This document shows, piece after piece, positions 17,359 to 46,804 of a stretch of 64,000 bases of DNA. The notes under the pieces were generated by a model. It ran no database searches. It saw nothing but the letters and a program-made list of their open reading frames with translations, and was not told where the DNA came from. Position numbers and translations under genes: made by a program. Source of the stretch: Utricularia gibba (Eukaryota; Plantae; Magnoliophyta); NCBI GenBank assembly GCA_002189035.1, contig CM007991.1, positions 558,001 to 622,000 on the forward strand. Direction: 5' to 3'. The stretch's first letter is position 1. Each line of letters opens with the position of its first letter.

Positions 17359-19329
17359 TCAGAGCAGAAGCTTCAACGGTCGCATCATTTCATTGTCTTC
17401 ATGGTCAAGAATCTACAGGACAAAGAAAATGGGGGTCAGCATCAATTCACAGTTTTGAATCAGACGTTGAACAGTGGAAGCTCACATGGCAGTGGTAGAC
17501 GTATCCAGGCTCTGCAGTTGCATCAAAGGGATACCTTTGGTCCTTCTCCACCAGGTTGAACTTCACAACCACCGTAGTCACCGCCCCGCTCGCAATCTTG
17601 ACCACGTTTTTCCATGTTTTCTCGTGTGGGGGGATCTGATCGCCGGCCCCGGAGATGTAGGAGGAGATATTGCAAGCCACGGCTTCGTTCTTCTCCTCCA
17701 TACATGTCTTGAACTTGTCAACGGGGTCCAGAGTTCGCACTCTCATCGCCTGAAACACCGCCAAGTGAATGTGGAGAGGATGGTTGTCGTCCGTTAGATT
17801 TATCACTTCCCAGATTTCCGTCGACCCGCTTCGCGGCGTCTCTGTCACCGGATCGTTGAACCTCTTCCCGTTGATGTTGAGTCGCACCGGTTCCTCATTT
17901 TGTGTTTTCTCGTATAACGCGATGTATCTCTTCACGGTAGCTTTCCTGGAGGCTTCTTCCACGGACTCCAATGGATAAGCGCGCAATTTCTCGGGGATTG
18001 TTGAAGTGTCAGGGGTGGCCGGAGGTCCGTGATGAATGACGAACTTCATTATCTCCCTATTGAGCTCATCATCTGCAGAGTCCTCTGAAAAGGGATATGG
18101 AGCATTGTTGGTGAGAATGGATTCTCCGGTAGGGCACGCAGAGAAGTCTATCACAGCATCGACGGTCTCCGCCGGAGCCAGCAGTACACTAGTGGCTACT
18201 ACCGGGGCCTCCAAGTACGAGCCATCGGACCCGACTATTGTGAAGGAGAGGCCGTTCGTCAGCGAAAAGTTGAAGTGCCTCGCGTTGGAAGCGTTGGTAA
18301 TCCGGAATCTGTACTTCCGACGCTGAACCTTCAGGTACGGCCAAGCTTTCCCGTTAACAATAATAGCGTCACCAAAGTACTCTGGCTGCCACTGCTGATG
18401 GAGTTCAGGGATGTTTCCGGTGCGATTGATGTAGAGTGACCCATCGGCGTTGAAACTCCGATCGAACACCAGCAGGTGACGATCGAATCTGGGGCTGGAA
18501 GGAAGATTGAGTCTCGCATCAAGATTCGGATTCTTGATAACATATGGCGCGATCAAGCCGGCGAGGAGGTTTACTCTGGTCAACCCGAGGGCGTGGTCAT
18601 GGTACCACAGATTGCGAGAATTTTGAACATTGGGATACATGTATGTCGCTCCCGAATGCCCCCAATTGGGCCCTGTTTCGTTGAAGTTGGCTGTGAACCA
18701 TGAGAGGGCATTACCGTCGCTGGCCGGAGGTTGAACGCCCCCGTGGAGATGGACCACCGTCGGAACGCCGCCGAATTTCGGGGTAGCTACGGTGATGTTC
18801 GGGTCCGTCGGGAGAATGTGTTGTTGGGGTAAATGGTTTTCCCAAGTCACGTAAGTGGAAACCCCGTGCAGTGCCTCGATCAATGGCCCCGGCACGGTAG
18901 CCTCGCTCCGCGACGTGCCGTAGGCAAACACCTTCGTCGCCGGCAGATCACGGTGGAATTTCTGTGTATTGAATGGCACCACAACACAGTCATTCATCAA
19001 GTTTACGATGAAATGCTAAGTCTCGCCAAAGTTTACAGACTTCTGTATAAAAAAAAAAAAAAAAAAAAAAAAGTTACCCATTGAATTTGGTACATGCCGA
19101 TGGTAAGATTCCCGGGAGTGGGAGGTTCGCCACTGCGACTGGGCGAGTAGCCGAGGAGCCTCCGCGTATCCGGAAGCGGATCGACGAACTTCTTCAGCGA
19201 CACAGCAACTTCCCGAAGCTCATCTTCTGTAACTGGAGCCGGTCCCAGAAGACCATATGATTCACTTGGAAGTTGGAGGAGGAGGAGGAGAAAGATGGCT
19301 GGGGACACAGTGTTATGTGCTGGTTTCAT
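17359..19329 (-). CDS. LPR1: LPR1-type (CotA-like) multicopper oxidase, copy A, 3 exons (19329-19078, 18961-17486, 17412-17359)
   Basis: Signal peptide; copper ligands [28 protein letters not shown]; LPR motifs [26 protein letters not shown]. Confidence 0.95.
19049..19072. repeat. 24-nt A homopolymer (poly-T on the sense strand) in intron 1 of LPR copy A
   Basis: Read directly from the sequence. Confidence 0.9.
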
Positions 19330-22082
19330 CCTTCTTAGACCTGCAAATCAGATCATTAGAAGGCTTGAAACTCTTGGATTGAGGAACCAGAAGCATCTTA
19401 TCCTTTATAGACCATTGCTAAAGCACAAGGTAAAGTGGTGGCAGCACTAGACAGAGATAAAGAAACCCCACTTGCCTATTTCCAATAAAAAAATATTGCC
19501 GGGTTCCAGGGCCGGCTGGAGCTCTGCGAAGGCGACTTCCACTTATTTTGCGAGTTCGACCTTGCATCACTGGTGACGAGTCACGAGTCCCTGTTATTGT
19601 GATGCTGCTACTGGGGTGGAGCCCGTAGGAAGACCCGAAGAGGTCGTCTGTGAAATCTTTCTTGACCGATTCAATGAACCATCTGTAGTAAGCCCCACAT
19701 CCATTGCTGCGTGAAGCCTGATGTAATAACTGATTGACTTGTTTACCCACTTCTTGGGAGACTATAACTGCTTTCATTTTCTTTCTTCTTTTTTTTTCCG
19801 GAAAAGTCTCAAGTTCCAGCTTCACGACTGATGAAGTTCAGTGGGGTAAGCTCGTTTCTAATAATGTGAGTTTTCCGGTGCTGGCAATGCCTTCCTAGTT
19901 AATCGGAGAAGCCTGTAGCTGCTTTCTTGGATGTGAAGAGGATGCCAACCTCTTCACTTGAGGGCTAATGTTTATCAATCTCTTTGCCAAAAGGCATGCC
20001 AACATACTCAAATCTAACTATGTAACATGAGGCAGCAATACTCCAACAATTGGCAAAAACCCCATTACTAAGAGTTACAGCTTAACATGAGATTTAAAAA
20101 CCACACAGACGAGATTATAAGGTTCATCCACAAGGTAAACGGTCATAAACTACACTTAGGCATTTCATCAAGCATCTGGCATGCAACCTTGGAACATAGC
20201 AATTAATAGCACCAAACTCATAATAAAGCAGCACATTTGGCCTACCAACACCAACCACAACCATATATTTCATATAGTCCAAATCACCCTACTGCCCACG
20301 TAAAGATGACCAACACAAGTGAAGTGAGTGGCAATGCTGCTTACCTTTGGTATATGCACCTTTCTGTACGACTCATCATGCAACAAAAGAAAAGCATGTT
20401 TTCCGTCCATTTTACCAAGAAACCCAATTTGAGTTTCGCATATACCTATATGAGCTATCCGATCATACATTTCAAAATATTGGAGTTTGCATACGCTTCT
20501 AGAAAGCCAAGCTGTTTCAAAACCTCCTTTGTACACTTGTTCCCACAAATCCCTGTCTCCATGTCAAAACCCCATGGAGCCCATAGGAAGGCACGAAGAG
20601 GTCTTGTGTGAACGCCATTGTTGAAAGATTCAATGCATGATGGAACATGATCACGCGTGTCGCAGACCGTCCATGGGAGTTGTTAGGGTAATTTATTTGT
20701 GTGAAAAAATCCATCTTTTTTAATATATTTTATTTATTTAATATGTAAACAAAATGGAAAAATGGTAGGATTCATAAATTACCCGAAATTTTAAAGAAAG
20801 TGGGGGCTGTCTTTCGGTCTTCCAAATTTCAAGTTTGTGGGAACTGAATGCTACCTAATCATTGACTTGGTCATTTTCACGCGAATGGTCTTAATTAGTG
20901 AAACAGTACTCGGCGAAATTTTTATTTGTAAAATAATCCCATTTGATAAAAATTGACTAAATAATCTTATTTTTTAAAATAAATATTTTCTTTTTTATTA
21001 TGTATAATGATTGTATTTTTTGTAAAATACAGTTTTTTTTATTTGTTTAAAATCGTATTTTTTTTTAAAACAGATTTGTATAAACGAAAAAAAAATTTAC
21101 TCGATATTATTTGATTGATTAATGTTCCTAAAATATTATTAGGGTTGGATTAAATTGGAAAATATTTTTAAAGTAGAAAAAATAAATCATGATTAATTAT
21201 GATTGGATCATGATTTGGGATTTAATTAGTGAATTGATTTTGAAATCAATAAATTAACAAATGATTCAATTATGATTTGAATTTACCATTTTTGAATAAC
21301 TTAAAACAAAAGTACTAATGAAGTAATATAATATTCATATTCATTTTCGAAGATATTTAGATATGTTCTGTGTAACATATAATTATATATATATTATTTT
21401 TATTTCAAATTATTTAATTTTGCATTTTTTGAAAAATATATTATTTAATAAAATATATAAATTATCTTATTCTCATTTTACTCATTCTCATTCTTTATAA
21501 AATATTAATGTAAAATAAAGAAGGTAGGAATACCATACACTCACGTGCAGAGGCACCCCAACGCAGCAGCTCCAAAATTTGAGCCCATTTTTTTAGGTTG
21601 AGTTTTGATTCGAGTTGAAGAAAATGCAGAAGCAGTTGCAGGTGTGGTCTGTGTCGAGATGCTGGTGTTCTTAATGTCTTTAAATGTGTACAGGATGTTG
21701 ATTTGGTGTTGAGACGCGTTGTTCAAGTCAAATTCACCGCACGGGTTTTGGAAGAGAATCCTCTGTTATTTTGTTCGATCGCCATTGAAGAACCTGCAGG
21801 ATGAGAATGGAAGAGCAACCGTGAAATTGGCCTGTAATGTGAACGGAGTCGATTTCACTTTTTTGTTTCTACTACCAGATTGATGTCGACAGATTGTGTG
21901 GCTCGGATCTCTTTCATAGACGGGAATGATCCGATTACGGCCGGCAATTTTGTCACGCAATCAACAGCCTCCGTATGCAAAGCGTGGACAGATATGGGAG
22001 GAATCAATGGGAGAATAGTTTTGATTTTTCAATCCCGGGTTCCGCGTATCGTCTGTGTACTTGATTGCAATCTTTCTGCGCG

Positions 22083-23436
22083 ATGGAGCAGCTACCCTCA
22101 TCATCAATGGTGCCTCCTGGCGTTGATCCGTTGCTCAAAGATCTGTCCGAGAAGAAAGCGACCTTCCGCCGGAACATAGAGTCGTTAGTGGCGGAACTTG
22201 AGGAGGCGCGCCGTCGCGTTGCTTCTCAAGAGCAGTTTTTTGCGATTGAAGCCCGTAAAAGGCAGGTACGCCATGCAGTTTCTAGAAAATTGGTGGCTTT
22301 TATGGTTTCAAGTCAACGAGCTGTTGATTTGAAATGATTTTTGACGAGTTCTCATGACCGATTTCATGTTCTTTCATCTCGCTTTACAGGAGGCTGAAAC
22401 TAAAGTAAAGGTGATGGAGAAAGAGATGGAAGTACTGAACAAGAGTATAGATGAGAAAGATGAAAAGCTTCATGCTTCTGAATCTGCTGCTCAAATGGTT
22501 CGATATCCCATTTTGATTATGAGTTAGCATCATGGCCATCATTGGAACAATAATTTGTCTTGCAGTTGGTTGAAGAATTGGGAGATATGCGATTGCAGCT
22601 TTCAGCGACAAGGGCGATTGCTCATGCAACTGCACAATCTGCAGTTCTGCAGTGTTCCATACTCTTGAAAGAACTTGAAGATAAGAACCGCTATTTGGAA
22701 GAAAATGAGGCATGTATTGATAGGCTAGAAGAGCTATTATATCATTTTCATAATGTCAGTTGTGCTAGAGAATGTTCTGAATCGCATCTAAAAGATGAGA
22801 TCTCACAAACTGAAAAGACGATCATGCAAGCACTATATGAGGCCAGAGCAGATAGAGATAATGACCTCTGGAGAGTTTTAGATGCAGATTTCGTAGAAAA
22901 ACACTTTGATATTACGAAACAGATGAAGATACAGGATTGTGAAATAGCAAAGCTGAAAGATGTAGTGGATATGGCTGCCAATTGTAAGGTCAAAACTAGA
23001 GAGATCGAGTCTCAGGTTCATTCCCATTTTGTTCATCATGTGTTAGCAACTCCAGCTAGTTCGTTTTCATTTACTTGATAAGGGTATTTTTATTTTTCCT
23101 GTGCGCAGCTAGAAAAGCATTATAAGAAAAATCAAGAGTTGAAAAAGAAGGTTTTAAAGATGGATTTTTTGCTTCAAGAGCTACGTGCTCAAGCACGTAA
23201 ACTCAGAAGGGTAAGTTGGTACTGCAACAATCTTCCATAAATTATATGTTTCTGACTCCTAATGTTTTGCACAGAGGGAAGATATGAAAAATAAAACTAT
23301 TGAGGAAATGAGGAATCAGTTGGAAGCTCTACAGCATCCCACGCATATTTGTAAGAATCAGAACTTTTGGGGATCCGGTTTTAGGATTATTATTCCAATG
23401 TCGATGATCATCTTTGTATTGCTTTCAAAGCGATAA
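22083..23436 (+). CDS. NEAP: Nuclear envelope-associated protein (NEAP) coiled-coil protein, divergent, 5 exons
   Basis: VDPLLKDLSEKKATFRRN N-terminus, coiled-coil body, LKKKVLKMDFLLQELR, and C-terminal NFWGSGFRIIIPMSMIIFVLLSKR* transmembrane tail typical of NEAPs. Confidence 0.85.
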
Positions 23437-23465
23437 TTTTTTGATCAAGGGAAATCTTGGTGACT

Positions 23466-23487
23466 GTATATATATATATATATATAT
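23466..23487. repeat. (TA)n microsatellite in the NEAP 3' region
   Basis: Read directly from the sequence. Confidence 0.9.
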
Positions 23488-23908
23488 TTAGTGTGTAAGA
23501 ATGCTGAGTTTTGTCATGGATAAGAAAGTGGTAGGATTGAGTGGTCAGATTCCTTGTTTCTACATTTTATAGATATATTTTCTCTTCAGAATACCGCACA
23601 TTTGTTGTTCAGAAAATTGCGGATATTTCGTTTGGAAAAAGTATATCTCATGCTTCGAATGCTGATATGCTTCTACTGCAGCGACATGTCATTTGGCCTT
23701 TTGAGAAGGATATTGAATTTTGAACACTGTGCAGTTTTTGCTCATCTCTGTAAATCTGGATCTCATGCATTCCTTAAAAACAACTGTCCGCAGTTATTAG
23801 TGATGATTCAGAGAATGTAGTGGGGTATTCTATGGCTCAAGGGTGACTGATCATGAAACTCTTACACCTCACAGAAATTATCAACTTCTTGCACAGCGAT
23901 AGTCTGAT

Positions 23909-25046
23909 TCAGTATTTAGACGGTAGTATCCCCGAGTATCCCCATGCGGTGGTAGATATTACAACAAGCATACAACCGAGTACAGGTTGCAAGTGGGAGG
24001 ACTTGGAAGCCGAAGAGGTATCTGCATTTTCCGGAACTTGAGAAATACCTGTAGGGGTAGGGGTTCCTTGCTGATCAGGGTTGCTTGCATTTGCATATAT
24101 GGGTGAAGCACCTAAACCACTGAAAGTGAATACCGTAAATAAATTGAAAAAAAAATATGTGTGCATATTGATGATGAAGGTTTAGAAAAATGAGAATGAC
24201 AATGCAGTTCAGTTGCGATGTTTTTACCCTGTTGTGGCTCCAGTTGAAGAAGCAGTGGCTGCGGTTGGACTCACAGTGACTGGGGATGCAGGAGTCGGTG
24301 ATATTATGATAGGCCCAGTGGCAAAAATGCATGAACCAGAGCCTTCATCATCAGGAGTGATGTTATAATAACAGCCGTAGAGATTTCAATGATTCATTCT
24401 GCTGGAACTATTTGAGCATTCTTACTTGGATTCACATTCGTTAATGCAGCCATGCCTCCGAAGTCGCAGCTTCCCTGGTGTGGATTTCTCTGGTAGTAGC
24501 TATTAAATGCATATGAGGCATGACTCTGCAGCGTGTTGGGACTGTAGCAAGTTGCTCCTTGTTGAATATTTGAGCAATTTGCTCCTCCCATTCCACAAGC
24601 ATAATCCAGGGCTGCCTGAAGACTCGCCTCTGGCACTCCATTCCTTGCCACACACCAGCTCCCCTGTGGAGCCAATGGCGCACTTGCTGCAGTCAGAGGA
24701 GCCGTGATTGGATTTCCACCATTATTGACTCCGCCGATTGGGTTTGTGACAGTTGTTCTTGGGTTCAGTGTGATTGGACTGGACGAGGGGACAGTGACAA
24801 CTGCGCTGGAAGCGTCACCTGAGCCAGGGGCGCCAATGAGATTATCATTGAAGAACTTGATCATCAGTCGTCTACCCCCTGAAGCGTTTTCTGCACCTGA
24901 ACCAGATGAGCTGATCAAACACCATGAAAGGTAATGTAAGCATACATTTTCAGCCTTTGATCATATCAGATCTCACCGCAGGATAAGGCAATGCTGACAT
25001 ATAAGAGGAACATGAGAAGTATGGGATGACAAACCGCTGGTTGCAT
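23909..25046 (-). CDS. X8 (CBM43) carbohydrate-binding domain protein, PDCB-like, probably GPI-anchored, 4 exons
   Basis: Signal peptide ([23 protein letters not shown]), X8 motif WCVARNG...[44 protein letters not shown]...CDFGG, Ser/Thr/Pro-rich linker, hydrophobic C-terminus. Confidence 0.88.
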
Positions 25047-25458
25047 TCTTTTTTCTTCAGTGAAATGGTCAGTCCTTAACGCTTACTTGAACTGAATACT
25101 ATTACATTGCAGCTCTTTATAACACGTTACTCGCATGGAGATGGAAAAAGATTGGCATCATTGCTTAATCGGCAAGCATATAAAGATGAGAAAAAGTATA
25201 AAAGGCATGCTGAGGAAAGCAGAGAATTTATCTTCTATAAAAGGTGTAGTGGTCTCTGTAAAGTAGTATGAGAACATATTCATGTTCAAAGTATACTGAA
25301 AGAAGAAAAGTTGGTACATTTACGCTAGCAGTCGAAAGATGTGACCCCAGCTGACGACAACTTCAACCAATCGGGTCAACCCGGGTTGAAAGGATTGGAG
25401 CTCCAAGAATATTATGAGCTAATCCAAAAGTCTCTGTACAGGCAGATCAATATCAAAA

Positions 25459-28992
<3,534 letters not shown>

Positions 28993-30288: not shown

Positions 30289-32207
30289 ATGAAACGAAAA
30301 CGCCTTCTACTGGTTCTGGTTTTTCTTCTGCTGCACGAATTCTGCTTGGGACGTTCGCCTCCTGTTTCCGATGAGGCGCTTAAACGTGTCGCGGCGTCGT
30401 TGCCAAAGTTCGTGGACCCTCTGCCACGAATCCCAAAGCTCTTGGGATACGCACCAGGCCTCCATGGTCGTCACCGTCCGGGAGCTCTCACCATCGGCAT
30501 GTATAAAACCAAATGGGTACTCGTATTCTCTCCGTAGTATTTCGTGCTCGTAGTGGAGTTTTGACTTTAATTAAATGATTCACGTGTGCATAGAAATTCC
30601 ATCGCGACTTCCCGGAGACGACGGTGTTCGCCTACGGTGCGTCTAGAAGGGAAGCCACCGTGCCGGGGCCATTGATCGAGGCACTTCGAGGAGTTCCCAC
30701 TTACGTTAGATGGGAGAATCATCTCCCAAAGAAGCATATTTTGCCATGGGATCCGACGATCTTAACGGCCAAGCCGAGATCCAATGGTGTTCCGACGGTG
30801 GTGCATTTGCACGGAGGCATTCACCCGCCGACGAGCGACGGCAATCCTCTTGCCTGGTTTACCTGTAACTTCTCCGAACGAGGGCCTGCGTGGACGCAAT
30901 CGACGTACATGTACCCGAATGCTCAACATGCCGGGAACTTATGGTACCATGATCATGCCCTAGGGTTAACTAGGGTTAACTTGCTCGCTGGCCTGTTTGC
31001 ACCATATCGCATTATAGACCCTGAACTTGAAGACAAATTCTATCTTCCGTCGGGCCCGGAGTTCGATCATAACTTGGTCGTGTTCGACCGGAGCTTCTAC
31101 GCCGACGGCTCTCTCTACATCAATCGTACCGGAAATGTCCCACATGTTCATCCGCAATGGCAGCCGGAGTACTTCGGTCATGCGATTATAGTAAACGGCA
31201 AGGCTTGGCCGTACTTGGAGGTCCGCCGTAGAAGATACAGGTTCCGGATTACGAATGCTTCCAACGCCAGGTACTTGAGCCTCTCATTGACGAACGGTCT
31301 CTCGTTTATCGTGATCGGCTCCGATGGGTCGTACTTGCCGAGGCCAGTCACCTCCTCCACCGTCCTGGTGGCTCCGGCGGAGACATTCGACGTTGTTATC
31401 AACTTCGGTTTGTCGGCTCATGGATCGTCCATTCTCACGAACGACGCTGCTTATCCCTTTCCATCAGGAGACCCCGTCGATGAGCTCAACAGCCAGATCA
31501 TGAAGTTTATCATAACAGAAGGGCCGTCGGGTATTCCGGACACCTCAACAGTTCCGAGACAACTACATACATACACCGGAGAATCCGCAGCCAAATCGGC
31601 AACGAAAGCTGCTAAGAGGAGATACATCGGACTGTACGAATACGCAAACTCCGACGGCGAGCCGTTGCGTCTCTACATCAACGGTAAGAGATTCTCGGAC
31701 GCGGTTACAGAAACGCCGCGAATAGGGTCAACTGAAATATGGGAGGTGATAAATCTCACTGAAGACAATCACCCCCTTCACATTCACCTGGCAGAGGTTC
31801 AAGCCGTCAAGGTTCAGAGCCTGAACGATCACGGCAAACGCTTCAAAAAGTGTATGACAGCGAAGTCAGACGCCGTCGCCTGTAATATTTCTTCCTATGC
31901 TACAGGAGGTTTGCATCGTGTCCCGGAGCAGGAGAAAACATGGAAAAATGTAGTGAAGATCGCCCCCGGCAACGTGACTACGGTGGTTGTGAAGTTCAAC
32001 ATGGTAGACGGTGATCGAGACTATCCATTTGACGCCACTCTTGATCCCGGCTACGTTTATCACTGCCATGTGAGTTGAAGATGAAGTAACTGCATATCAT
32101 TTGGGATCAACATTGATTAATATCATCTTCGTTTTCTTTGTCTTTTTGTGTAGATTTTGGACCATGAAGACAACCAGATGGTGCGCCCACTAAAGCTTCT
32201 GCATTAA
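30289..32207 (+). CDS. LPR1: LPR1-type multicopper oxidase, copy B, 3 exons (30289-30516, 30594-32069, 32154-32207)
   Basis: Signal peptide, all four copper-binding motifs, same two intron positions as the other copies, no lesion seen. Confidence 0.95.
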
Positions 32208-33550: not shown

Positions 33551-33569
33551 TAAATAAATAAATAAATAA

Positions 33570-33614
<45 letters not shown>
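33551..33614. repeat. Compound microsatellite (TAAA)n(TA)n
   Basis: Read directly from the sequence between LPR copies B and C. Confidence 0.95.
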
Positions 33615-33620
<6 letters not shown>

Positions 33621-35238
33621 TTCGCTTTGATTATCCAATTCTGAGGATTTTATGTTTTCATCTTTTAGAAAAAAAATATTTAAGAGAATCATTCTATTTG
33701 AACATGTACAGTTATTCATTCGTAATCAATGGGATACCATCACAAGTCATATTATATAGATAATATTTAAAACAGTGGAAGGGACGAGTTGACCAAAGCA
33801 CAGGGCCATCCACTATTGAGAGCTCAAAAAAAAAATGAAGACACCAAAAATCCAATACCATCTCAAGAAGGCTTACTACAGTCTCAATGTGAAAACAACA
33901 TTTTTGCAATAAGATATCAATGCCAATTTCTTACATCTTTTTTATTGCAGTTTCACGTTTTTTTCTGAATAAAAGTATAATCAATACCATGGCACTGTGA
34001 ATTCACCATGGAGTGCAGTATTGGTGAACAGAAAAGTGGGGTATGTGAGTTCACAAGGTCACAATTTCTTTTCAAAATACCTGGTGCTGAATCCTATATC
34101 TTCATGTCTGGTCTATAAATAATGGCATTCTGTCAACTTCATTCTCAGATCTGCTCTCTAGTTTGCCTCCTCGTTTTCACAAGCCATGAAACGAGAGAAG
34201 AAATGTCTCGTTCTGGTTCTTTTACTGTGGGAATCATGCTTCAGGCTATGCCTCTCTCAGCAGCCGCCCGTCACTGATCAGGCACTTCAGCAGATTGCTG
34301 CGTCCTTGCAAATGTTCGTCGACCCTCTTCCCCAAATACCGAAACTGTTGGGCTACACTCCCGGCCGCGATGGCGAACCTCATGTTCCCGGAAAGCTCAC
34401 CGTCGGCATGTATCAAACCAAATGGGTATCTACAATCTCAAATTCAACTCATTTTTCTTTGTTTAATGCTTTTATTCTGATGTTCAAGTTTTTGAAAAAC
34501 TGTTTGCAGAAATTCCACCGTGATTTCCCACCAACTACTGTTTTTGCGTACGGAACCTCGCAAGCTCGAGCGACGGTGCCGGGGCCGGCGATCGAGGCCG
34601 TACAAGGAGTTCCAACTCACGTGACATGGGAAAACCATCTCCCCAAGGAACATATTCTTCCATGGGATCCAACAATCGCCGCGGCGATACCGAAATCCGG
34701 TGGCGTCCCCACGGCGGTGCATCTGCACGGTGGCATTCACCCACCATCAAGCGATGGCCACGCCCTTGCCTGGTTCACGGCCAACTTCGCTGAACGGGGA
34801 CCGACGTGGACCCAGTCCACGTACACTTACCCTAATCTTCAATCGGGTAATCTATGGTACCATGACCACGCCGTTGGGCTAACCAGGGTTAACCTCCTCG
34901 CCGGCCTTATAGCGCCGTATGTTATTAGAGACGAGGAGCTTGAGGAAAGGCTGAATCTCCCTTCCGGTCCCGAATTCGATCGCAACTTGTTCGTGTTCGA
35001 TCGGAGCTTCTATGCCGACGGCTCGCTTTACATCAACCGCACCGGAAATGTCCCAAAAGTTCATCCGCAATGGCAACCGGAATTCTTCGGTCATGTTATA
35101 CTTGTGAACGGGAAAGCTTGGCCTTTCTTGAAAGTTCACCGCCGGAAATACAGGTTCCGGATCACCAATGCTTCCAATGCGAGATACTTGAATCTTGCAC
35201 TGACGAATGGGCTTTCGTTTACTGTAATCGGTTCTGAT

Positions 35239-35628
35239 TGATGTCGAGTGAGGACGAATATGAGATAAACCAGCAGCAAACTGTGAGAAATGTGGAGGAC
35301 CCAGAACAGGAAAATACGAATGTGTTGAGAGATAACGGGAGGAAGAAGAAGAAGGTCTGTCAGCAACTCGGACTGATTATACTGGACAGCAAGATCAGAA
35401 GATGGGCCACCAACAAAGATCTTGCTACTCATCCACTTCAAGAAAATGGCCCAACATGATGATATGGCCCAACGTGCTGAAGTCAATATTGTTGGAAGTC
35501 GTAGTGAGCAACGGCTAATCCCTAGAAGTAGGCGACCGTTGCTAAAGAACTATAAATATGTGTACTCTTGCATAACATTAAAATATATCTGTTCTACAAC
35601 CCTCACACATCGATATAAACTGCTATCA
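35239..35628 (+). repeat. 5' LTR (390 bp)
   Basis: TGATGTCGAG...CTGCTATCA; by eye identical to 40196-40585; TATA-like CTATAAAT in its 3' part. Confidence 0.97.
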
Positions 35629-35646
35629 TGGTGAACCCGACGTGAA
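35629..35646 (+). other. Primer-binding site complementary to the 3' end of cytosolic tRNA-Trp
   Basis: TGGTGAACCCGACGTGAA directly follows the LTR; its reverse complement TTCACGTCGGGTTCACCA matches the plant tRNA-Trp(CCA) 3' end as recalled. Confidence 0.85.
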
Positions 35647-35760
35647 ACAAGCAGCTCAACATTGCTATCCTTCCAAACACGGTTTGCCACTCAAACACTA
35701 CATCTAAAGGCTTCTTACCTTACTCTATATTCTATCGCAGGTTCTCAAAAGAGTGTCATC

Positions 35761-38700
35761 ATGTCTGTAACAAACATATTACCTCCCATTTTTGACGGAA
35801 AGGAATACGATATTTGGGCGCCAAAAATGGAGATATATCTCCAACTTCATGGGCTCTGGAAAATAATAGCCACTGATCCAGTTTTTGAAGGAACACCTGA
35901 AGAAAAAACTGCAGCTGAAAAAGCTTATAGAGACAAAGAAATTCAGGCTGCAGCTGTGCTAGCCACAGCAGTGGTTGGAGATGCTTACAGGTGTATAACT
36001 CGAAGGTCTCCAAGAGAGGCGTGGCTTATGCTCGAGAAAACCTTTGAAGAAACAAAGGAAGACAAGCACAGGGAGATACAGAAACTATGGAATGAAGTTT
36101 ACAACTTCAAAATTAGAGATGGCGAGGTAGCCACCAATGCAGAACAACTTCTCAAAAACCTGGAAAAACTAAAGCGCCTTGGAGAAGAAGTTGACTCCCG
36201 TGAAGAGCGCAAGCTTAAGGCCAGGATCATTCATAGTGCTCCGGCAGATTATGATGCTGTCGTTGAATCCTTGGAAGCAACCGGATTTCTAGAAACTCTG
36301 AGTCTGCAGCAACTGCTCCAACACTTCAAAAATGTGGACAGCAGACGTAAATCTCGCAATGAAGAAAATCTATTAGAAGCTGCCTTCAAAGCATCACTTA
36401 CTATAGCAGGTCCTAAAGGAGAAAATGGGACACAACAATATTCTGCACCAAGTTTCCTACCTGTCAAGAAAGAGAAAAAGGGGCCACATCCTCCTTGCCC
36501 ATATTGCGCACAGAAAAACCACATTCCAACGAACTGTTTTTGGCATCCTGAGGCTCATTGCGCAATCTGTTCAACCAAAGGCCATGTGGAGCGTGTGTGT
36601 CCCACCAAGAAATCATATGCCTCTACTTATGTTGTTGCTGCATCTTCTGAACATTCAAAAAACAAATCAATTCATGTATCTCCTGATGATTCAAATATGA
36701 AAGTGAAGTCTTCAGTTTATATCTTGTGCAGCAAGACTACTCTCTCTGATTTCACTGATCTACGACACAACACAATCTGGTTCATTGATTGCGCCTGCAG
36801 TAATCACTTGACCAACAACAAGTCTATATTCACAACATATACCCCAATATCAGGAAAAACTCTCACCATTGCTGATGGAACGCTCATTGCAGTTGAAGGT
36901 GTTGGATCAATCTGTCTGGAAACTGAACAAAAACTCATCAAGATTACTAATGTATTCTATGTACCAAAGGCTTCTCACAACTTACTGAGTGCAGGACAAC
37001 TAGCAGAATGTGGATATGAGTTGAATATAGAGAACAATATGTGCTTGTTGAAGGATTATGCTCACAATATTGTACTAAAAGTGCCCATGGTAAATCGCCT
37101 CTTTCCAGTTAACTGCATGACAACTAATAGTAATTTCTGTCTTGCAGCTGTAAATACCTCTTTCCTATGGCACAAAAGATTAGGTCACTATCATGCAAGC
37201 CAACTCAGAACAGCGCAAACCCAAGGAGTTATACATGGCGTACCTCAATTAAAGGACTGGAATTTCCCGTGCAGCACCTGTCTATTTGGGAAAATGCACA
37301 AGAAGCCATTCAAGAATCGTACTGAAGTATCCGACTCTAAACTACAGCTAGTAGTCTCTGACGTATGCGGACCTATGCATGTTGAGACACCTGGTGGAAA
37401 GAAATTCTATGTCCTATTTATTGATGACTACACCAAGCATATGTGGGTATATTTTCTTAAGCAAAAGTCTGAAGTGACTAAATACTTCAAGCAGTTCAAG
37501 ATGATGGCAGAATTACAAAGCAATTGTAGAATACTTACTTTGCATTCAGACAATGGCGGGGAATACAAATCATCCGAACTCCGAGACATCTGCAATGCAA
37601 GTGGTATAGTTCATCGGTTTACCGTTCCATATACCCCTCAACAAAATGGTGTTTGTGAAAGGAAAAATCAAACGATTATGAATATGGCTCGTTGCTTGTT
37701 ATTGGAACACAACTTACCATTGCGCTTTTGGGGAGAAGCTGTTAACACAGCGGTATTCCTATTAAATCGACTTCCCACCAAAGGAATACCTGAAGGAAAA
37801 ACTCCACATGAACTGTGGTATGGAAAAGTCCCAGATCTACAGAATCTGAAAATCTTCGGATCCCTCTGCTATGTCCATATATCTAAAGAAAAACGCAGAA
37901 AGTTAGAGAATCATGCTCAAATGGGGGTCTTTATGGGATATTCGGACTCCTCTCAAATTTACAGAATATTTATTCCATCCAAACAATGTATAGAAGTTCA
38001 AAGATGTGCTGATGTTGTGGTTGAAGAAAGTCTGACCTATGACTGGCATAATATCTCTTCTACTCCTGAAAACGAAGCTGAATATTCCAGAGACATGCAA
38101 CTCCTATTTCCTATCAATGCATCTGAAAATCTTACTGAAATGCACGAAGAGAATCTTGTCAATGAACTTCCTGAAACTAATACCACTATTACGAATAATT
38201 CCAATCTTGTTGGTGCAGAAACAGAGGACAACAATTATTTCAGACATCACTCAGAAAGGAATCAAGACATGCAAAGTAATGATCATATGCCATATCCTAC
38301 TTCGTCGCAACAGCCTCAACATGGAGAAAGCAGAGAATCAGAATATCAATTCTCTTCATTACAAGAACAGGAGGAAAATACATCTCACTTCCAAAACTCT
38401 GAGCAAATTATATCTGAAAGACATGATAACACAGAAAATATCTCAGAAGATTCAGCAAACAACTACAATTCCTATACACATCACTTTATGCTGCAGTCAG
38501 CCGATCATCTCATAGATGAAGAGCCTGCTAGAGGTTACTGTCCTCTTACTGAAGTCTATGACAGATCGCTTATGATTTGTGAACCTACCTCTCCCTTCGA
38601 AGCTCTCAATGATCCTGCATGGAAAACCTCAATGGATAATGAGTTACAGGCCATAGCAGAGCATCAAGTGTGGACAGCGGTGGATAAACCTCTCAATATT

Positions 38701-40416
38701 AAACCGTTGGGATTAAAATGGATTTATCGCACAAAGCTAAATCCAGACGGCTCAGTAAATAAGTTAAAGTCTAGGCTGGTTGCAAAAGGATATCTTCAAA
38801 AGGAAGGTATAGACTACTGGGAGACTTTCGCACCGGTAGCTCGTCTGGATACAATAAAATTGATTATCGCATTAGCCGCCAGTCAAGGTTGGATCCTGCA
38901 CCATTTAGACATAAAGAATGCGTTTCTGAATGGAGACTTGAAAGAAGACATATATGTTGAAAATCCTCCCGGTTTTACACTAAAGGATGGCTCAAATAAG
39001 GTGTTAAAACTCCAAAAGGCTCTCTACGGGCTTAAACAAGCGCCCAAGGAATGGTATTCAACCATAGATTCATACTTTGGTCAAATGGGTTATATCAGAA
39101 GCAAGAACGACCCTACTCTATACACCCTCAACAATCAAACTGGAAAGGTCATCATATCTTTATACGTTGATGACATCTTACTAACAGGAAATAACGAGAC
39201 ATTGATAGCAGATCAAAAATCAAGGCTCAAACAACGGTTCGAATTGACTGATCTAGGGCCAGCAAGATATATTCTTGGACTAGAGATAATACAAGATCCC
39301 AATTTTATATTTCTCAGCCAGCAAAAATACACTGAAGACTTACTAAAAAAATTTGGGATGGACAATGCAAAAGAAGCAACTACGCCTTTCACTCCATACC
39401 TGAAGAACAAGGCAAACAACTATCTGAAAGAATTAAATTCTGCCGATTCAGGGCCACAAGATCCTCAAGAAAATTCAGTGAACATACGAGAATATCAGAA
39501 GACTGTTGGTGCCCTACTATACCTCACCTCAACTCGACCGGACATTACATTCGCTGTAACGTTTCTATCCAGGTTTATGCATCACCCTCTTGCTTTACAC
39601 CTTAGAATAGCTAAACAAATATTCAAATATCTGAATGCTACAAAAACTATGGGTTTATACTTCAAAAGGCATACTGACCTATCTCTTCAAGGGTTCGTAG
39701 ACTCTGATTTCGCAGGTGACGAATCTGATCTTAAATCCACCACTGGTTATTTGTTTACTCTGGGCTCTGCTGCATTTGCTTGGAACAGCAGAAAACAGAC
39801 CTTAGTAGCTCAATCCTCAGCCGAAGCAGAATACATGGCTGGAGCTTGTGCTGCAAATCACGCTCAATGGCTCCTGAAATTATGTGAAGATTTACAGATC
39901 AAGATTAACAAGCCACTCATTCTGAAAATTGACAGCAAATCAGCCATAAGTATAGCTCAAAATCCGGTCATGTTTGGGAAGACGAAGCATATCAAAATCA
40001 AATACCATGTTCTTAGGGAATACATCAAAGAAGGAAGCATAAAATTGGAGTATTTACCATCAGAAAGACAAGCCGCAGACATTCTCACCAAAGCCCTCTT
40101 TCCAAGTCATTTCTCTCAAATCCGTGAGCTATTAGGGCTGCGCAGAAATCCCTTGATTACTGCTGCCTCATCTCATGTTCTTCCTCAAGGAGGAATGATG
40201 TCGAGTGAGGACGAATATGAGATAAACCAGCAGCAAACTGTGAGAAATGTGGAGGACCCAGAACAGGAAAATACGAATGTGTTGAGAGATAACGGGAGGA
40301 AGAAGAAGAAGGTCTGTCAGCAACTCGGACTGATTATACTGGACAGCAAGATCAGAAGATGGGCCACCAACAAAGATCTTGCTACTCATCCACTTCAAGA
40401 AAATGGCCCAACATGA
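35761..40416 (+). CDS. Copia gag-pol polyprotein, uninterrupted
   Basis: Gag PIFDGKEYDIWAPKM; two CCHC knuckles (CPYCAQKNHIPTNC, CAICSTKGHVERVC); protease WFIDCACSNH; integrase WHKRLGH..CSTC, SDVCGP, SDNGGEY, NGVCERKN; RT RLVAKGY, LDIKNAFLNG, LYVDD; RNase H DSDFAGD, SSAEAEY, ADILTKAL. First ATG at 35761; the ORF track opens at TTG 35662. Confidence 0.97.
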   Translation: MSVTNILPPIFDGKEYDIWAPKMEIYLQLHGLWKIIATDPVFEGTPEEKTAAEKAYRDKEIQAAAVLATAVVGDAYRCITRRSPREAWLMLEKTFEETKEDKHREIQKLWNEVYNFKIRDGEVATNAEQLLKNLEKLKRLGEEVDSREERKLKARIIHSAPADYDAVVESLEATGFLETLSLQQLLQHFKNVDSRRKSRNEENLLEAAFKASLTIAGPKGENGTQQYSAPSFLPVKKEKKGPHPPCPYCAQKNHIPTNCFWHPEAHCAICSTKGHVERVCPTKKSYASTYVVAASSEHSKNKSIHVSPDDSNMKVKSSVYILCSKTTLSDFTDLRHNTIWFIDCACSNHLTNNKSIFTTYTPISGKTLTIADGTLIAVEGVGSICLETEQKLIKITNVFYVPKASHNLLSAGQLAECGYELNIENNMCLLKDYAHNIVLKVPMVNRLFPVNCMTTNSNFCLAAVNTSFLWHKRLGHYHASQLRTAQTQGVIHGVPQLKDWNFPCSTCLFGKMHKKPFKNRTEVSDSKLQLVVSDVCGPMHVETPGGKKFYVLFIDDYTKHMWVYFLKQKSEVTKYFKQFKMMAELQSNCRILTLHSDNGGEYKSSELRDICNASGIVHRFTVPYTPQQNGVCERKNQTIMNMARCLLLEHNLPLRFWGEAVNTAVFLLNRLPTKGIPEGKTPHELWYGKVPDLQNLKIFGSLCYVHISKEKRRKLENHAQMGVFMGYSDSSQIYRIFIPSKQCIEVQRCADVVVEESLTYDWHNISSTPENEAEYSRDMQLLFPINASENLTEMHEENLVNELPETNTTITNNSNLVGAETEDNNYFRHHSERNQDMQSNDHMPYPTSSQQPQHGESRESEYQFSSLQEQEENTSHFQNSEQIISERHDNTENISEDSANNYNSYTHHFMLQSADHLIDEEPARGYCPLTEVYDRSLMICEPTSPFEALNDPAWKTSMDNELQAIAEHQVWTAVDKPLNIKPLGLKWIYRTKLNPDGSVNKLKSRLVAKGYLQKEGIDYWETFAPVARLDTIKLIIALAASQGWILHHLDIKNAFLNGDLKEDIYVENPPGFTLKDGSNKVLKLQKALYGLKQAPKEWYSTIDSYFGQMGYIRSKNDPTLYTLNNQTGKVIISLYVDDILLTGNNETLIADQKSRLKQRFELTDLGPARYILGLEIIQDPNFIFLSQQKYTEDLLKKFGMDNAKEATTPFTPYLKNKANNYLKELNSADSGPQDPQENSVNIREYQKTVGALLYLTSTRPDITFAVTFLSRFMHHPLALHLRIAKQIFKYLNATKTMGLYFKRHTDLSLQGFVDSDFAGDESDLKSTTGYLFTLGSAAFAWNSRKQTLVAQSSAEAEYMAGACAANHAQWLLKLCEDLQIKINKPLILKIDSKSAISIAQNPVMFGKTKHIKIKYHVLREYIKEGSIKLEYLPSERQAADILTKALFPSHFSQIRELLGLRRNPLITAASSHVLPQGGMMSSEDEYEINQQQTVRNVEDPEQENTNVLRDNGRKKKKVCQQLGLIILDSKIRRWATNKDLATHPLQENGPT

Positions 40417-40585
40417 TGATATGGCCCAACGTGCTGAAGTCAATATTGTTGGAAGTCGTAGTGAGCAACGGCTAATCCCTAGAAGTAGGCGACCGTTGCT
40501 AAAGAACTATAAATATGTGTACTCTTGCATAACATTAAAATATATCTGTTCTACAACCCTCACACATCGATATAAACTGCTATCA
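40196..40585 (+). repeat. 3' LTR (390 bp)
   Basis: Direct repeat of 35239-35628, preceded by the PPT and followed by the TSD. Confidence 0.97.
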
Positions 40586-43500
40586 CTGATAACTCGTATT
40601 TGCCTTCTCCGGTGACGTCCTCCACCATCCTGTTGTCTACGGCGGAGACATTCGATGTCGTGATTGATTTCTCCCAATTCTCTGGCCGTGAATCAGTTCT
40701 CACGAACAACGCTCCTTACCCCTATCCCGCAGGGACTCCCGTCGATAAGCTCAACAGCCAAATAATGAAATTCCGTGTCCAAGGACCGCCACCCCGACCA
40801 GACACTTCGGTAATTCCGCGGTTCTTACAGAATCACCAGTCCGCGGCAGTGGCGGCCCAAAGGGCTTCTGTAAGGAGATACATCGGATTGTATGAGTACA
40901 CAAATTCAGCAAGCGAGCCACTGCACCTCTACATCAACGGGAAAAGATTCAGTGACCCGGTGACGGAGACGCCGCGAAGCGGGTCAACGGAAGTATGGGA
41001 GGTAATAAATCTCACCGGCGACAACCACCCTCTTCACATCCACCTTGCCGAGTTTCAAGCGATCAAAACCCAGAATCTAAACGATCCTAGAGGCGCTTTC
41101 GCTGACTGCATGAAGGTGAAAACGTATGCCATTGCTTGCAACGTTTCGTCTTACGCCACCGGGTCCGTGACTCCGATTCCGGCGTATGAGAAAACCTGGA
41201 AAAATGTAGTGAAGCTTCCACCAGGTACTGTGACTACGGTGGTTGTGAAATTCAACGTCGGGGACAACGACCAAAAGTATCCTTTCGATGCAACCGCCGA
41301 GCCCGGCTACGCGTATCACTGCCATGTTAGTTTTCTCAGCCACCTTCATGTTAAAGCAGGTGCATTTTGTCACTCTGTTGAATTACCATTAACATCTTCC
41401 TCCTTGTGCAGATCCTTGATCACGAAGACAACGAAATGATTCGTCCCTTGAAGCTCGTGCACTAAGCATCCCTTCTCCGATCGATCATGTTGTCGTCCAA
41501 ATGCATAATAAATGTGTTATGTTGAACCCAAATCAATCTTCCTGCGAGTCACATTTCAATAATCGATCACCCTGTTCCAGGATAACTCAGAAAACCGATT
41601 ACAACACTAAGATTTAACACCATTCTCCAAAAACACGACTCATCTGCTTTAAAATAAATATTAAAGAATATTAGAACAAGCAATCCAATTTTGGGTTTGA
41701 AAAATGAAAAGATTAAAAAAATTAGGTATAATTGATTACTTTTAATTTTTAATTTATTATATATTTGATTATTTTTATTTTCATTTTTGATTTGTAATTG
41801 TTTATTTTAATAATCACCTCCAAGTCAAACTTGTTTTTGGATACAGTTAAAACTTCTTTTTCTTGTGTATATTGTAGGTAAAACTTGTCTTTCGATCTAA
41901 TAAAGAAATACAACACACCTCATCATTTTGTACTGCATGACTGAAGATAAGCATAAAAGTCATATAATAATGCCTACAGAATTCCAGCCACGCACATGGC
42001 CTTAGGTACTGGTGGAGATGCCGCCTGCCGTTGGAAACAATTATATTTTACCTCTTCAAAAAAAATTAATACATTTGAGATTGAAATTTCATCAATTGAA
42101 TTTTATCTCCTTTTAATCAATTTCAAAATTTGAAATTGTTTTTGTTCCGGTTCAAAAGCTGCCCGTGATGGAACCTGCTTGAGATTACACCGCGCTGTAA
42201 AGGAGTGGAAATGACATTTTTAGATGTACTTTTGATTTTGGGTTTTCAAAATAGATGATATTTAAAAAGTATTTGTGAAATAGATGATGTTTTAGTTTTG
42301 ATTTGTAAAATAAATGAGTTTTGAAATAAAAACAATATGTTTAATTGGTAATGTTATTAATTATTATTTTCATATTATTTTAAAATAATGTAAGCTATTC
42401 AATATATATTCAAAAAAACTGTTTAATATAAATAAATTATTATTGCTATAATTTTTTTTATAAATAAGTCTATAATTGATATATTTAATTTATAAAATAT
42501 AAAAATAATCAATTTATTATATATAAACCATTTATTTAAATTTAAAATAAATGTAAAAAATCATTATTTGTTTTTTAATGATTTATAATATTATTATATT
42601 TATTTTAATAAGTTAATTTTATACTTTGTAATTTAATATTTTAATAACATAATCTATTTATCAAACCTCATCTATTTTGGACACGCAGTGGTTTCTTCTT
42701 TTGTTAAGAGTGTGGCAGACACGAGGCTTGTAGGCATTTTTTTGGACTTAGGCATGTCTGATATAATATTAAAAAAAATTTAAATTAAATAGCACATATC
42801 AATTGTCACATATAACATCATATATTAAATATATAGGGAATTTTATTATTATTTATAACGTAAACTCATCTTTTAATATTTTTTTAATTCTATGATTTAA
42901 AAACATTCTCACTCATTTTTATTAAAAATATTATAAGTAATATGTATATTTTGAAATTTTTTATATATTTAAATTTAATATCAAATATATAATAATTAAT
43001 CATCATTTAAATAAAAATCTCTAATAGAACATTCAAATTTTAACAATTTTTTAACGTTTTAAATGATTAATAACCGCAAGTTAATTGCATAACAATTCAA
43101 AAAAAAATCGATTGCCAATCAAAATATGATTGAATTGTGTTTTTTGTAAAAAAAGACATGAAATGATTAATAATTGAATCATGTTTAAACTTTTATTTAT
43201 TTATTATGTTTTAAAATAATTTAAATTTAACTAAATCCCTTATAAAACATAGAATTACATACAAATTAATTTCTTTCTATATCCACTTCTCTCCACCCAC
43301 CACCGCCAACAAATCGTTGGTTAGGTATGTGACGTGAATTTTTTAAAAAAAATTAGAAGAATGATTAAATTTTTCTTTTTTTTTTCAATTTTTTAATCTC
43401 TTAAAACAATAATTGTGTCTGTCTCATGATATTATTGTCCAACAATCGGGTTGTTGGCACAATCGGGAAAAACAATAACACTTTTTTTTCCGCCGATTAG

Positions 43501-44553
43501 CTGAGACATCAATTTCCGATACAGCTCAAAATTTTGCGCTGCATCGAGGAAGACAAAATGATAATAATAATTATTAATAATTACTTGAAATGTCGAAAAC
43601 GTACAGCCACACATCAAGGTCAAGATGTGTTTCATTTGGGTGATGCTTTTTCTTAACGCATGTATAAAATATTTCGATCAATTTACAAAAAAAATAAAAT
43701 AATATAAAAAACATCGTATTTCCGATACCTTAAATTTTGAAAACGCTGCATGTGATAAATATTATTGGACTAAATAAATGAAACAAAATCTCTCATGAAA
43801 TTCAACCAATAAAAAGAATTGTAAAAAAATGATAAATTTAGTTATTATGAAAAACAGATGATTTTCAAAATAAAATATAAATTTTATTCAGTTAATTTGG
43901 AATCTACGAATTCGTGTATTTTTGAGGATCAACATGTCTGACCGAGGTTATTCTAGTCATCTTATTGCCCTCTTAATCATTGTGTTCATGAGAACTGGAT
44001 CATTGAGCCCTAAAAATGCATCAAAATTAGGCTGATGCCCCGGACAAGTGAGTGCAATATATGTTGAACTTTAGGATTCAATGAATCGAATGATCATATG
44101 TAAAATGTAAATATACAAAAAATATATGTCACATTAAAAAAAATTAGAATAACTGATTATTATTTATATATAATTTCTTATATACTAGATTATTTTATTT
44201 CATTTTTCCATATATGATTTACTGTTCTAATATATCTGAAACTTCATCATCAATGATGAAGGTGTACTGTACGAACGCTATCATGGTTGAGTTTATAAAT
44301 AATAACGAACAAGTCGCGATGTGGGGTGTGTGTGTGTGTGTGACCTTAGGTCAGGGATTTCAAGCCAGCCCCCGCCTTGTCAACCAGCAATATGAACCTG
44401 TGACTGGAAGCGTCTCGTGTTTCCGGCAAGTGGGGCTTTGTTTTTGGTATACAGAATGCAATCCCGCAGTCCCATCTCACCTATAAATCATGACACCCCC
44501 TGCCCACTAGTCTGTCCCCTCACAGGTCTCCTGACCTTCTTCCTGGATAAGCC

Positions 44554-46804
44554 ATGGAAGGAGGAAGACTTCCAGTCTCGCTTCTTCTTCTTCTTCTGCA
44601 ATTGCTGTTGTTTTCCAACCTCTGCTTCGCCCAACAGCCGCCCATCACCGATCAGAGGCTTCAGCAGATCGCTGCGTCGTTGCAGAAGTTCGTCGATCCT
44701 CTCCCTCAAATCCCCACGCTTCTCGGCTACACGCCCCGCCGGCTCGGCGAACCTCACGGCGCCGGAAGTCTAACCATCGGCATGTATCAAACCACATGGG
44801 TACTCTACTAATTTTCCATCATCTTCATGAAATCTTATTATGTTTCTGCATTTATCTCATGCTACAGTTGAAAATAACAACAACATAATATATGTTTTCT
44901 TTAATTAATAATATATTTAAAATATTTTATTTATATTTAGTTAAACACGAATTATACATTTATAATGTAGATAATTAGTTTATAGTTTTCTTTTTTAGTT
45001 TCAATGGAGTGGGTGCTAAAAGGTCAACAAATTTGTTTTTGTATGGGTATCATAATGTAACATCACGTAGATGTCGCATGAGGATGTGGTTGATATCAAC
45101 ATTCTTCTATATTTTTGGATATATTAATAATTGTGGAATATTATTTATTAATATTAATATTAATATTAATATTAATATTATCGCTGATAATATTCATATG
45201 ACATTCTAGAAATTCCACCGTGACTTCCCACCGACCACCTTATTCGCGTACGGACCGTCTCAAGCACTAGCGACGGTGCCGGGGCCGGCCATCCATGCGG
45301 TGCGAGGAGTCCCAACGCACGTCACGTGGGAGAATCATCTTCCCAGAAGTCATATTCTTCCATGGGATCCAACCATCGCCACAGCGATACCCAGATCCGG
45401 CGGTGTACCCACGGTGGTGCATCTTCACGGCGGAATTCATCCGCCGTCTAGCGACGGGCACGCCTTCGCTTGGTTTACGGCGAACTTCGCCGAGAAGGGG
45501 TCGACGTGGGCGCAGGCCACTTACACGTATCCGAATGTGCAACCGGGGAACCTGTGGTACCATGATCATGCAGTTGGGTTAACTAGGGTTAACCTGCTTG
45601 CCGGGCTAATTGCGCCGTACGTTGTTAGGGATGAAGAGCTTGAGGAGAGATTGAATCTTCCCTCCGGCCCGGAGTTCGATCGGAGTCTGTTTGTGTTTGA
45701 TAGGAGCTTTTACGCTGATGGGTCGCTTTATATCAACCGCACAGGTAATGTCCCGGAAGTTCATCCGCAGTGGCAACCGGAGTACTTCGGCCATGCTATT
45801 ATCGTCAACGGAAAAGCTTGGCCGTTTTTGAATGTCCACCGCCGGAAGTATAGATTCCGAATCACCAACGCTTCCAATGCGAGGTACTTGAATCTTGCCT
45901 TGACGAATGGACTGTCGTTCACCGTGGTCGGCAGCGATGGATCGTATTTACCGTCACCGGTAACATCCTCAAGCATCTTGCTATCGCCGGCGGAGACATT
46001 TGATGTCGTCATTGATTTCTCCCAGTCTTCGAGCGGAGAATCAATTCTCAGTAACAGTGCGCCGTACCCTTTCCCGACAGGAACCCCCGTGGACAACCTC
46101 AACAGTCAGATAATGAAATTCATCATACAGCCAGGGCCGGCACCAGACAGTTTAACGGTCCCAAGAAGTTTAGTTAGTCATGAATCGGCGTCAGCGGCCG
46201 CCGAGAAAGCTACCGTGAAAAGATACATTGGATTGTACGAGTACCAGAACTCCGCATCCGAGCCCCTACACCTCTACATCAACGGCAAGAGATTCACCGA
46301 CCCCGTGACTGAGACACCAAAGAGCGGCTCTACGGAGGTTTGGGATGTGATAAATCTCACCGGCGACAACCACCCACTTCACATTCACCTTGCCGAGTTC
46401 CAAGCTATCAGGACTCAGGACCTGAATGATCCCAACAGCACCTTCACAAACTGCATGACGCAGAAGACCGACGCCATCGCTTGCAATATTTCTTCCTACG
46501 CCACCGGGCAGGTGACTCCGATCCCGGCACACGAACGAACATGGAAAAACGTTGTCAAAATAGCGCCAGGCACGGTGACCACGGTGGTGGTGAAATTCCA
46601 TCTGCTGATCAACGGCGGAAGTTACCCGTTTGATGCCACCGCGGAGCCTGGCTATGTCTACCACTGCCATGTTAGTTCCCGTTTCAACTCTCATGCTCAC
46701 TCGACTGCTTTGTCTCCTTCACGAGTACTAACATTTGGGCTCTTATGCAGATCCTTGATCATGAAGATAATGAGATGATCCGCCCCTTGAAGCTTCTTCC
46801 GTGA
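44554..46804 (+). CDS. LPR1: LPR1-type multicopper oxidase, copy D, 3 exons (44554-44799, 45210-46670, 46751-46804)
   Basis: Signal peptide, all copper ligands, conserved intron positions; closest in sequence to copy C; TATA-like CTATAAAT about 70 nt upstream, as in copy C. Confidence 0.95.
45147..45180. repeat. (ATTAAT)n microsatellite in intron 1 of LPR copy D
   Basis: ATTAATATTAATATTAATATTAATATTAATATTA read directly. Confidence 0.85.

Follow-up and report, generated by a model that had tools for sequence, protein, structure and literature searches.

A stretch of 64,000 bp from the bladderwort Utricularia gibba (GenBank assembly GCA_002189035.1, contig CM007991.1, positions 558,001 to 622,000 of the forward strand), referred to here as the window and numbered from its first base, contains a tandem array of four genes (copies A, B, C and D) encoding LPR-type, CotA-like three-domain multicopper oxidases, with copy A on the minus strand and copies B, C and D on the plus strand. 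By analogy with characterized LPR enzymes, the array is probably an ordinary, old tandem set of ferroxidases, in which the lid loop of the iron pocket would tune the affinity for Fe2+ and from which copy C has recently been knocked out; it is a further case of LPR tandem expansion and no new kind of enzyme. The original prediction, made from the bare sequence, had described four paralogues, and four genes are indeed present, but only three of them (A, B and D) are intact, because a copia insertion that had been overlooked splits copy C. Genes were called from six-frame open reading frames (ORFs), from a tblastn search that used the best homologue as query and from splice junctions read directly, which gave the following features:

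17359..19329, minus strand: LPR copy A, 593 amino acids (aa); exons 19329-19078, 18961-17486 and 17412-17359; called from splice sites and Pfam
30289..32207, plus strand: LPR copy B, 585 aa; exons 30289-30516, 30594-32069 and 32154-32207
34186..35238, plus strand: 5' part of LPR copy C; exon 1 at 34186-34425 and the initial 729 bp of exon 2 at 34510-35238
35239..40585, plus strand: Ty1/copia long terminal repeat (LTR) retrotransposon, 5,347 bp, within exon 2 of copy C
40591..41465, plus strand: 3' part of LPR copy C; remainder of exon 2 at 40591-41325 and exon 3 at 41412-41465
44554..46804, plus strand: LPR copy D, 586 aa; exons 44554-44799, 45210-46670 and 46751-46804

Three exons and two phase-0 GT-AG introns at common positions were observed in all four copies, where intron 1 follows the tryptophan of YxxxW and precedes KFHRD, intron 2 separates HCH from ILDHEDN, and the final exon measures 54 bp in each case. 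The Pfam domains Cu-oxidase, Cu-oxidase_2 and Cu-oxidase_3 were found in copies A, B and D and over both halves of copy C, the closest solved relative is CotA of Bacillus subtilis (E about 1e-90, 38–39% identity), and the N-terminal segments of the copies resemble signal peptides. An AlphaFold model of copy D, which was built from exon 2 alone and leaves out 82 residues at the N terminus and 17 at the C terminus, two ligands of the type 1 (T1) copper site among them, reached a predicted template modelling score (pTM) of 0.82 and matched CotA structures in Foldseek with template modelling (TM) scores of 0.73–0.77. In this model domain 1 and the segment around E269 are poorly predicted, with a predicted local distance difference test (pLDDT) value below 50 at model residues 184-192, and the lid surrounding T370 is confident, with block means of 86–91. 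The closest named matches are plant proteins annotated as "multicopper oxidase LPR1 homolog 1-like" from Paulownia, Perilla, Coffea and Ipomoea, with a maximum identity of 67–71%, and no database protein more than 71% identical to any of the copies was found. The domain content, the CotA match and the fold bear out the earlier assignment to LPR1-family, CotA-like oxidases. Intron 1 of copy D (44800-45209) is AT-rich and 410 bp long, as against 77–116 bp in copies A, B and C, with an (ATTAAT)n-type microsatellite at about 45140-45180; the spacer between copies C and D (42001-44000) is likewise very AT-rich, at 23% GC.

The element in copy C is inserted between the codons for D and N of GSD/NSY, so that the codon of E269 precedes the insertion and those of positions 370 and 462 follow it. 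Its two LTRs (35239-35628 and 40196-40585) measure 390 bp each, have TG...CA ends and differ by 0 mismatches, and a 5-bp target-site duplication, CTGAT, is present at 35234-35238 and 40586-40590. A single uninterrupted gag-pol ORF of 1,584 aa (35662-40416) carries the Pfam domains Retrotran_gag_2, gag_pre-integrs, rve and RVT_2 in Ty1/copia order, with a beta-barrel as well. The order of LTR, gag, protease, integrase and reverse transcriptase, the TG...CA ends and the 5-bp duplication are those of plant Ty1/copia elements in general, as are the primer-binding region starting with TGG and the purine-rich tract preceding the 3' LTR; the primer-binding site itself differs from the textbook match to initiator tRNA-Met. 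Since the LTRs are identical, the insertion is very recent, and plant substitution rates place the upper bound (95%) of its age at roughly 0.3–0.5 million years. The element looks autonomous and very recently active, and as it appears intact it may still be active in the genome; no second copy and no solo LTR of it was found within the 64-kb window. Taking out the element together with one CTGAT repeat restores a continuous reading frame of 585 codons in copy C, free of stops and frameshifts. Because the reading frame is otherwise without defect, copy C can be regarded as a functional gene up to the insertion and as a very young knockout since. In practical terms, the picture has to be corrected for a fresh retrotransposon knockout of one gene in four; the earlier suggestion that copy C acts on another substrate fails in the present haplotype, where the disrupted gene can act on nothing.

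The states of individual residues were taken from a MAFFT alignment of the four copies with 155 homologues and numbered according to Arabidopsis LPR1 (AtLPR1) through a 581-aa protein of Arabidopsis suecica (P0149), chosen because its E269, D370, E461, D462, H464, C563 and H568 match the AtLPR1 numbers exactly. The window copies are 55–56% identical to this reference. Copies A to D each carry the copper motifs HLHGG, WYHDH, HPLHIH and HCHILDHEDNxM, the last with the axial Met, which match the four LPR1 motifs HXHG, HXH, HXXHXH and HCHXXXHXXXXM, and all 12 copper-site residues are intact in each of them; the gene models and motifs together confirm the shared intron positions and the complete copper ligands that had been proposed. 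In AtLPR1 the Fe2+ triad consists of E269, D370 and D462 (Naumann et al. 2022, PMC9168544), as the original prediction had correctly stated. Both E269, in the PQWQPEYFG motif, and D462, in INLTxDNHP, are kept in four of four copies, with F in place of Y270 in copy C, and the third position and its neighbourhood vary as follows:

18062..18094, minus strand: lid loop of copy A, PFSEDSADDEL, equal in length to that of the other copies
18079-18077, minus strand: copy A position 370, Ser (TCT); position 461 of this copy is Asp
31470-31472, plus strand: copy B position 370, Asp (GAC); E269 at 31167-31169, E461 at 31761-31763, D462 at 31764-31766
40735-40737, plus strand: copy C position 370, Thr (ACT); E269 at 35080-35082, G461 at 41017-41019, D462 at 41020-41022
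46083-46085, plus strand: copy D position 370, Thr (ACC); G461 at 46362-46364, D462 at 46365-46367

The complete triad is therefore found in copy B alone, and no Asp of copies A, C or D falls on position 370 in the alignment. These states, with the remodelled acidic loop of copy A and Glu, Asp or Gly at position 461, agree with the original prediction down to the codon positions. Acidic residues stand near position 370 but not at it in the remaining copies, namely D373 in C and D and E368, D369, D372, D373 and E374 in A. Loop 363-373 aligns with that of the AtLPR1 proxy with no gap in any copy, whereas CotA requires a gap of three residues; the short linker and the missing triad of a CotA-type enzyme were accordingly not found, the long linker, E269 and D462 being present in the copies. 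The view of copy B as the likely ferroxidase holds insofar as its Fe-site residues (E269, D370, E461 and D462) are, on residue comparison, the nearest to AtLPR1 among the four.

Under the favoured reading of an old ferroxidase array, the four genes, of which three remain intact, would have arisen locally by duplications that followed the branching (A,(B,(C,D))), and their proteins would be secreted (endoplasmic reticulum, cell wall) and function in the manner of AtLPR1 and rice LPR5. Fe2+ would bind next to the His of the T1 copper in an acidic pocket to which E269 and D462 contribute most, and one electron would pass to the T1 copper and on, by way of the Cys-His bridge, to the trinuclear cluster that would reduce O2 to water. 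The lid loop 363-373 and residue 461 would constitute the naturally variable part of the pocket in the "LPR1 homolog 1-like" subfamily, and the differences among the copies at these places most likely tune the affinity for Fe2+, alongside differences in expression, and not the class of substrate. For AtLPR1 itself, loss of E269 or D462 abolishes activity, while D370 sits in a variable linker, and the D370A variant in tobacco extracts showed wild-type-like activity with a Michaelis constant (Km) about 4-fold higher, so that D370 was judged "expendable for high-affinity Fe2+-binding" by Naumann et al. (PMC9168544). LPR ferroxidases tie the iron redox chemistry of the cell wall to phosphate sensing and iron transport, and the natural lid variants of the array (Asp, Thr and acidic remodelled) in otherwise similar proteins offer material for testing the third triad residue.

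The phylogenetic distribution of the states at positions 370 and 461 was assessed with a FastTree tree of 132 full-length rows including the four copies, rooted on gymnosperms, and with an IQ-TREE tree of 63 related rows, whereas conservation and co-occurrence were counted over 128 full-length homologues. Two clades of angiosperm LPRs were observed in the 132-row tree, an AtLPR1/LPR2-type clade with D370 in 22 of 22 rows and a large "LPR1 homolog 1-like" clade of eudicots, monocots and magnoliids, which holds all four window copies and has D370 in 27 of its 105 rows and lacks it in the other 78. Position 370 of the 120 closest homologues is D in 49, S in 22, T in 21 and N in 20, and at least 13–16 changes between D and non-D are required over the whole tree. 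The window copies form one clade (support 99) that branches as (A,(B,(C,D))), and its sisters are Paulownia and Perilla (support 96–97) and one further transcript, with N, N and T at position 370, respectively, and G at 461 in all of them; N or T at 370 together with G461 also prevails in the surrounding asterid group, which includes Coffea and Ipomoea. Since the nearest relatives mostly lack D370 and have G461, the D370/E461 pair of copy B looks derived, and T370/G461 of copies C and D looks like the usual state of the lineage, an order of events that was obtained by parsimony with sparse sampling of lamiids. The description of the triad as diverged thus had the polarity reversed. At the Paulownia locus (L001), one LPR gene stands alone and no neighbour gene of the window occurs within 10 kb on each side, so that the locus is uninformative on the age of the array; the next-closest homologue (P0004) comes from 2-kb Logan contigs with no gene context.

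Residue differences at position 370 are the norm for this subfamily and have already been catalogued. Data S2A of Naumann et al. (PMC9168544) lists many angiosperm LPR-like proteins that are 53–59% identical to AtLPR1 and score "+" for E269, "?" or "-" for D370 and "+" for D462, such as those of Eucalyptus, Manihot, Ipomoea nil, Musa, Ananas and Sorghum and rice LPR1/3/4, where "?" denotes an acidic residue at a non-conserved position and the proteins are still listed as LPR1-like. Copies C and D (with D373) and copy A (with five acidic residues in 368-374) resemble the "?" class, for example Ipomoea nil XP_019153641.1 and the Eucalyptus grandis paralogues, and fall in the same identity band with the same triad pattern, the difference being the loss of P367 and G369 in copy A. 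Tandem arrays have been published as well, since rice has five LPR genes inside 65 kb (Cao et al. 2016, PMC5048653) and LPR expansions are known in Nelumbo and Acorus (PMC9300462), so that the set cannot be called undescribed, as it had been. A higher LPR copy number has been reported in aquatic and wetland plants, and genome papers also link LPR ferroxidases with adaptation to wet habitats. The species with many paralogues among the matches are often aquatic or wetland plants as well (Nelumbo, Trapa, Typha, Acorus, Colocasia, Spirodela, Zizania and Zostera), a pattern that agrees with the published copy-number claims.

Pairwise ratios of non-synonymous to synonymous substitution rates (dN/dS) are 0.08–0.16 (0.13–0.16 for copy A against the other copies and 0.08 for C against D), with dS saturated at 1.4–2.0, from which it follows that duplication took place long ago and that purifying selection has since maintained the copies. 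At the 175 columns with conservation of 95% or more in the 128 homologues, copy A deviates at 8, copy B at 2, copy C at 3 (V146A, Y270F and D498Y) and copy D at 1. The deviations of copy A are P51R, G191R, P264Q, P367S, G369D, D498E and P530S and a deletion at Y421; among these, G191 is kept in 128 of 128 homologues, P264Q adjoins the E269 motif, and P367 and G369, which are each kept in 127 of 128, are both changed in the lid, a joint loss with no counterpart among the 128 homologues. Copy A also has an insertion of two residues (WGHSGATY) and the longest terminal branch (0.42–0.52), being the most diverged copy, and on its residues it is the real outlier of the array. Copy B has D347N (31401-31403 region) at a position that is Asp in 128 of 128 homologues, in the VVIDFS strand just preceding the lid loop.

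The disruption of copy C, the changes at conserved sites in A and C and the long branch of A would also be expected if A and C were redundant genes turning into pseudogenes, with the loop changes as degenerative noise. This is very improbable, as the low dN/dS over saturated dS speaks for long and strong purifying selection, the genes keep open frames, proper splice sites and all 12 copper-site residues, and the insertion in copy C is both very recent and its sole lesion.

A functional split, in which copy B oxidises Fe2+ and the T370/G461 copies, perhaps with A, oxidise another metal or organic compounds, is a more serious alternative, and several observations that favour it, or that simply count against uniform ferroxidases, have to be weighed. 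The D370A variant of AtLPR1 complements lpr1 poorly, and the purified variant is inactive in vitro (PMC9168544). Rice LPR3, expressed as an Escherichia coli fusion, showed no ferroxidase activity, and its authors doubt a role as ferroxidase (PMC9917114); its loop, PTGTP, is identical to that of copy D. Rice LPR5, which lies in the same broad clade as the window copies and has G461, shows ferroxidase activity and partially complements Atlpr1 (Ai et al. 2020, PMC7475252), which speaks against a split, but it was rejected as an unambiguous example of an enzyme active in the absence of D370, since Naumann et al. score its D370 as "+" from a later Asp in a longer loop. The pocket of copy A may act differently, since eight conserved positions are broken there, P367 and G369 of the loop among them. 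Two types of pocket are moreover suggested by the raw counts over the 128 rows, where an acidic residue at 461 accompanies D370 in 30 of 52 rows and non-D370 states in 2 of 76, and G461 occurs in 35 non-D370 rows and 4 D370 rows; and CotA, an enzyme free of the triad, has laccase and bilirubin oxidase activity (PMC9168544).

The functional split is nevertheless considered rather doubtful. E269 and D462, which are essential in AtLPR1, are retained in every copy, and so is the long lid loop of AtLPR1 length, with no contraction of the CotA kind. The residue at position 370 alternates between N, S, T, D and A, with 28 changes in the 63-row IQ-TREE tree, close to the 35.8 under shuffled labels, and is for this reason regarded as a weakly constrained site. 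When the association of 370 with 461 or 373 is restricted to phylogenetically independent pairs, about 3 informative contrasts are left, with a median p of 0.5–1, and for 370 against 461 (median p about 0.5) the test is powerless and speaks for neither side. The LPR3 protein assayed was made in E. coli and truncated, without the signal peptide and the N-terminal region. The idea of a functional split among LPR paralogues is in any case already published, and the rice enzymes LPR5 and LPR3 continue to stand on opposite sides of it. A further proposal, that from an ancestral pocket with G461 and no D370 copy B independently re-evolved an AtLPR1-type D370/E461 pocket and copy A built a hyper-acidic lid, giving three lid versions with distinct metal affinity or specificity, is judged unlikely; if it were true, three lid versions in one 30-kb array would allow direct swaps that could define the role of the lid in LPR enzymes. 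The residual interest of the locus lies in the apparently secondary D370/E461 of copy B, the unique acidic lid of copy A and the intact, very young copia element.

AtLPR1/LPR2 (At1g23010 and its paralogue) share with the window copies the fold, the copper motifs, E269, D462, the long linker, the signal peptide and a 54-bp last exon, and with copy B also D370 and E461; they differ in belonging to the other clade and in having four exons instead of the three found here (PMC5048653), and Asp370 is absent from copies A, C and D, with G461 in C and D. Rice OsLPR1/3/4/5 belong to the same broad clade as the window genes and resemble them in having 2–3 exons, a long exon of about 1.45–1.55 kb and, in most rice LPR genes, a 54-bp last exon, with Q, T, A or P at position 370 and often G at 461; the rice cluster differs in that it arose by independent, lineage-specific duplications (monocot versus lamiid), whereas in the window array unrelated genes (X8 and MAP kinase) stand between members and one member is inverted. 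CotA (PDB 1GSK, 4AKP) has the same copper sites as the window proteins but lacks the acidic triad, and its shorter linker (aa 321-326) opens the site to bulky substrates (PMC9168544), whereas the window proteins keep the long linker. A preprint on wheat TaMCO3 was set aside as irrelevant, as it deals with an AtMCO3-like oxidase and no LPR.

Rfam and tRNA scans of the 64-kb window gave no matches. Two P1BS-like motifs (GNATATNC, the site class of PHR1) lie at 20350 and 20438, about 1 kb upstream of copy A, and no such motif (GNATATNC) was found in the 1.5 kb upstream of copies B, C and D; with about 0.3 expected per 1.5 kb, the two motifs before copy A are too weak to interpret. An intronless gene of the VIT family (49578-50213, plus strand; 211 aa, Pfam VIT1 with E 5e-39), similar to vacuolar iron transporters, follows copy D at a distance of 2.8 kb, so that an iron-handling gene adjoins the ferroxidase array, maybe by coincidence. 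The surroundings (2929-16980, 21880-28690 and 51794-62697) are gene-dense with short introns, and the X8 and MAP kinase genes stand between copy A and copies B, C and D. The neighbouring genes are:

2929-3918, minus strand: Dof zinc finger
11702-12682, minus strand: mTERF
13472-15952, minus strand: PPR protein, 826 aa
24394-24918, minus strand: X8-domain protein
about 26.6-28.7 kb, minus strand: MAP kinase, several exons
start 51794, plus strand: ANTH-domain protein
about 60.5-62.7 kb, plus strand: RNA polymerase I A49-like protein

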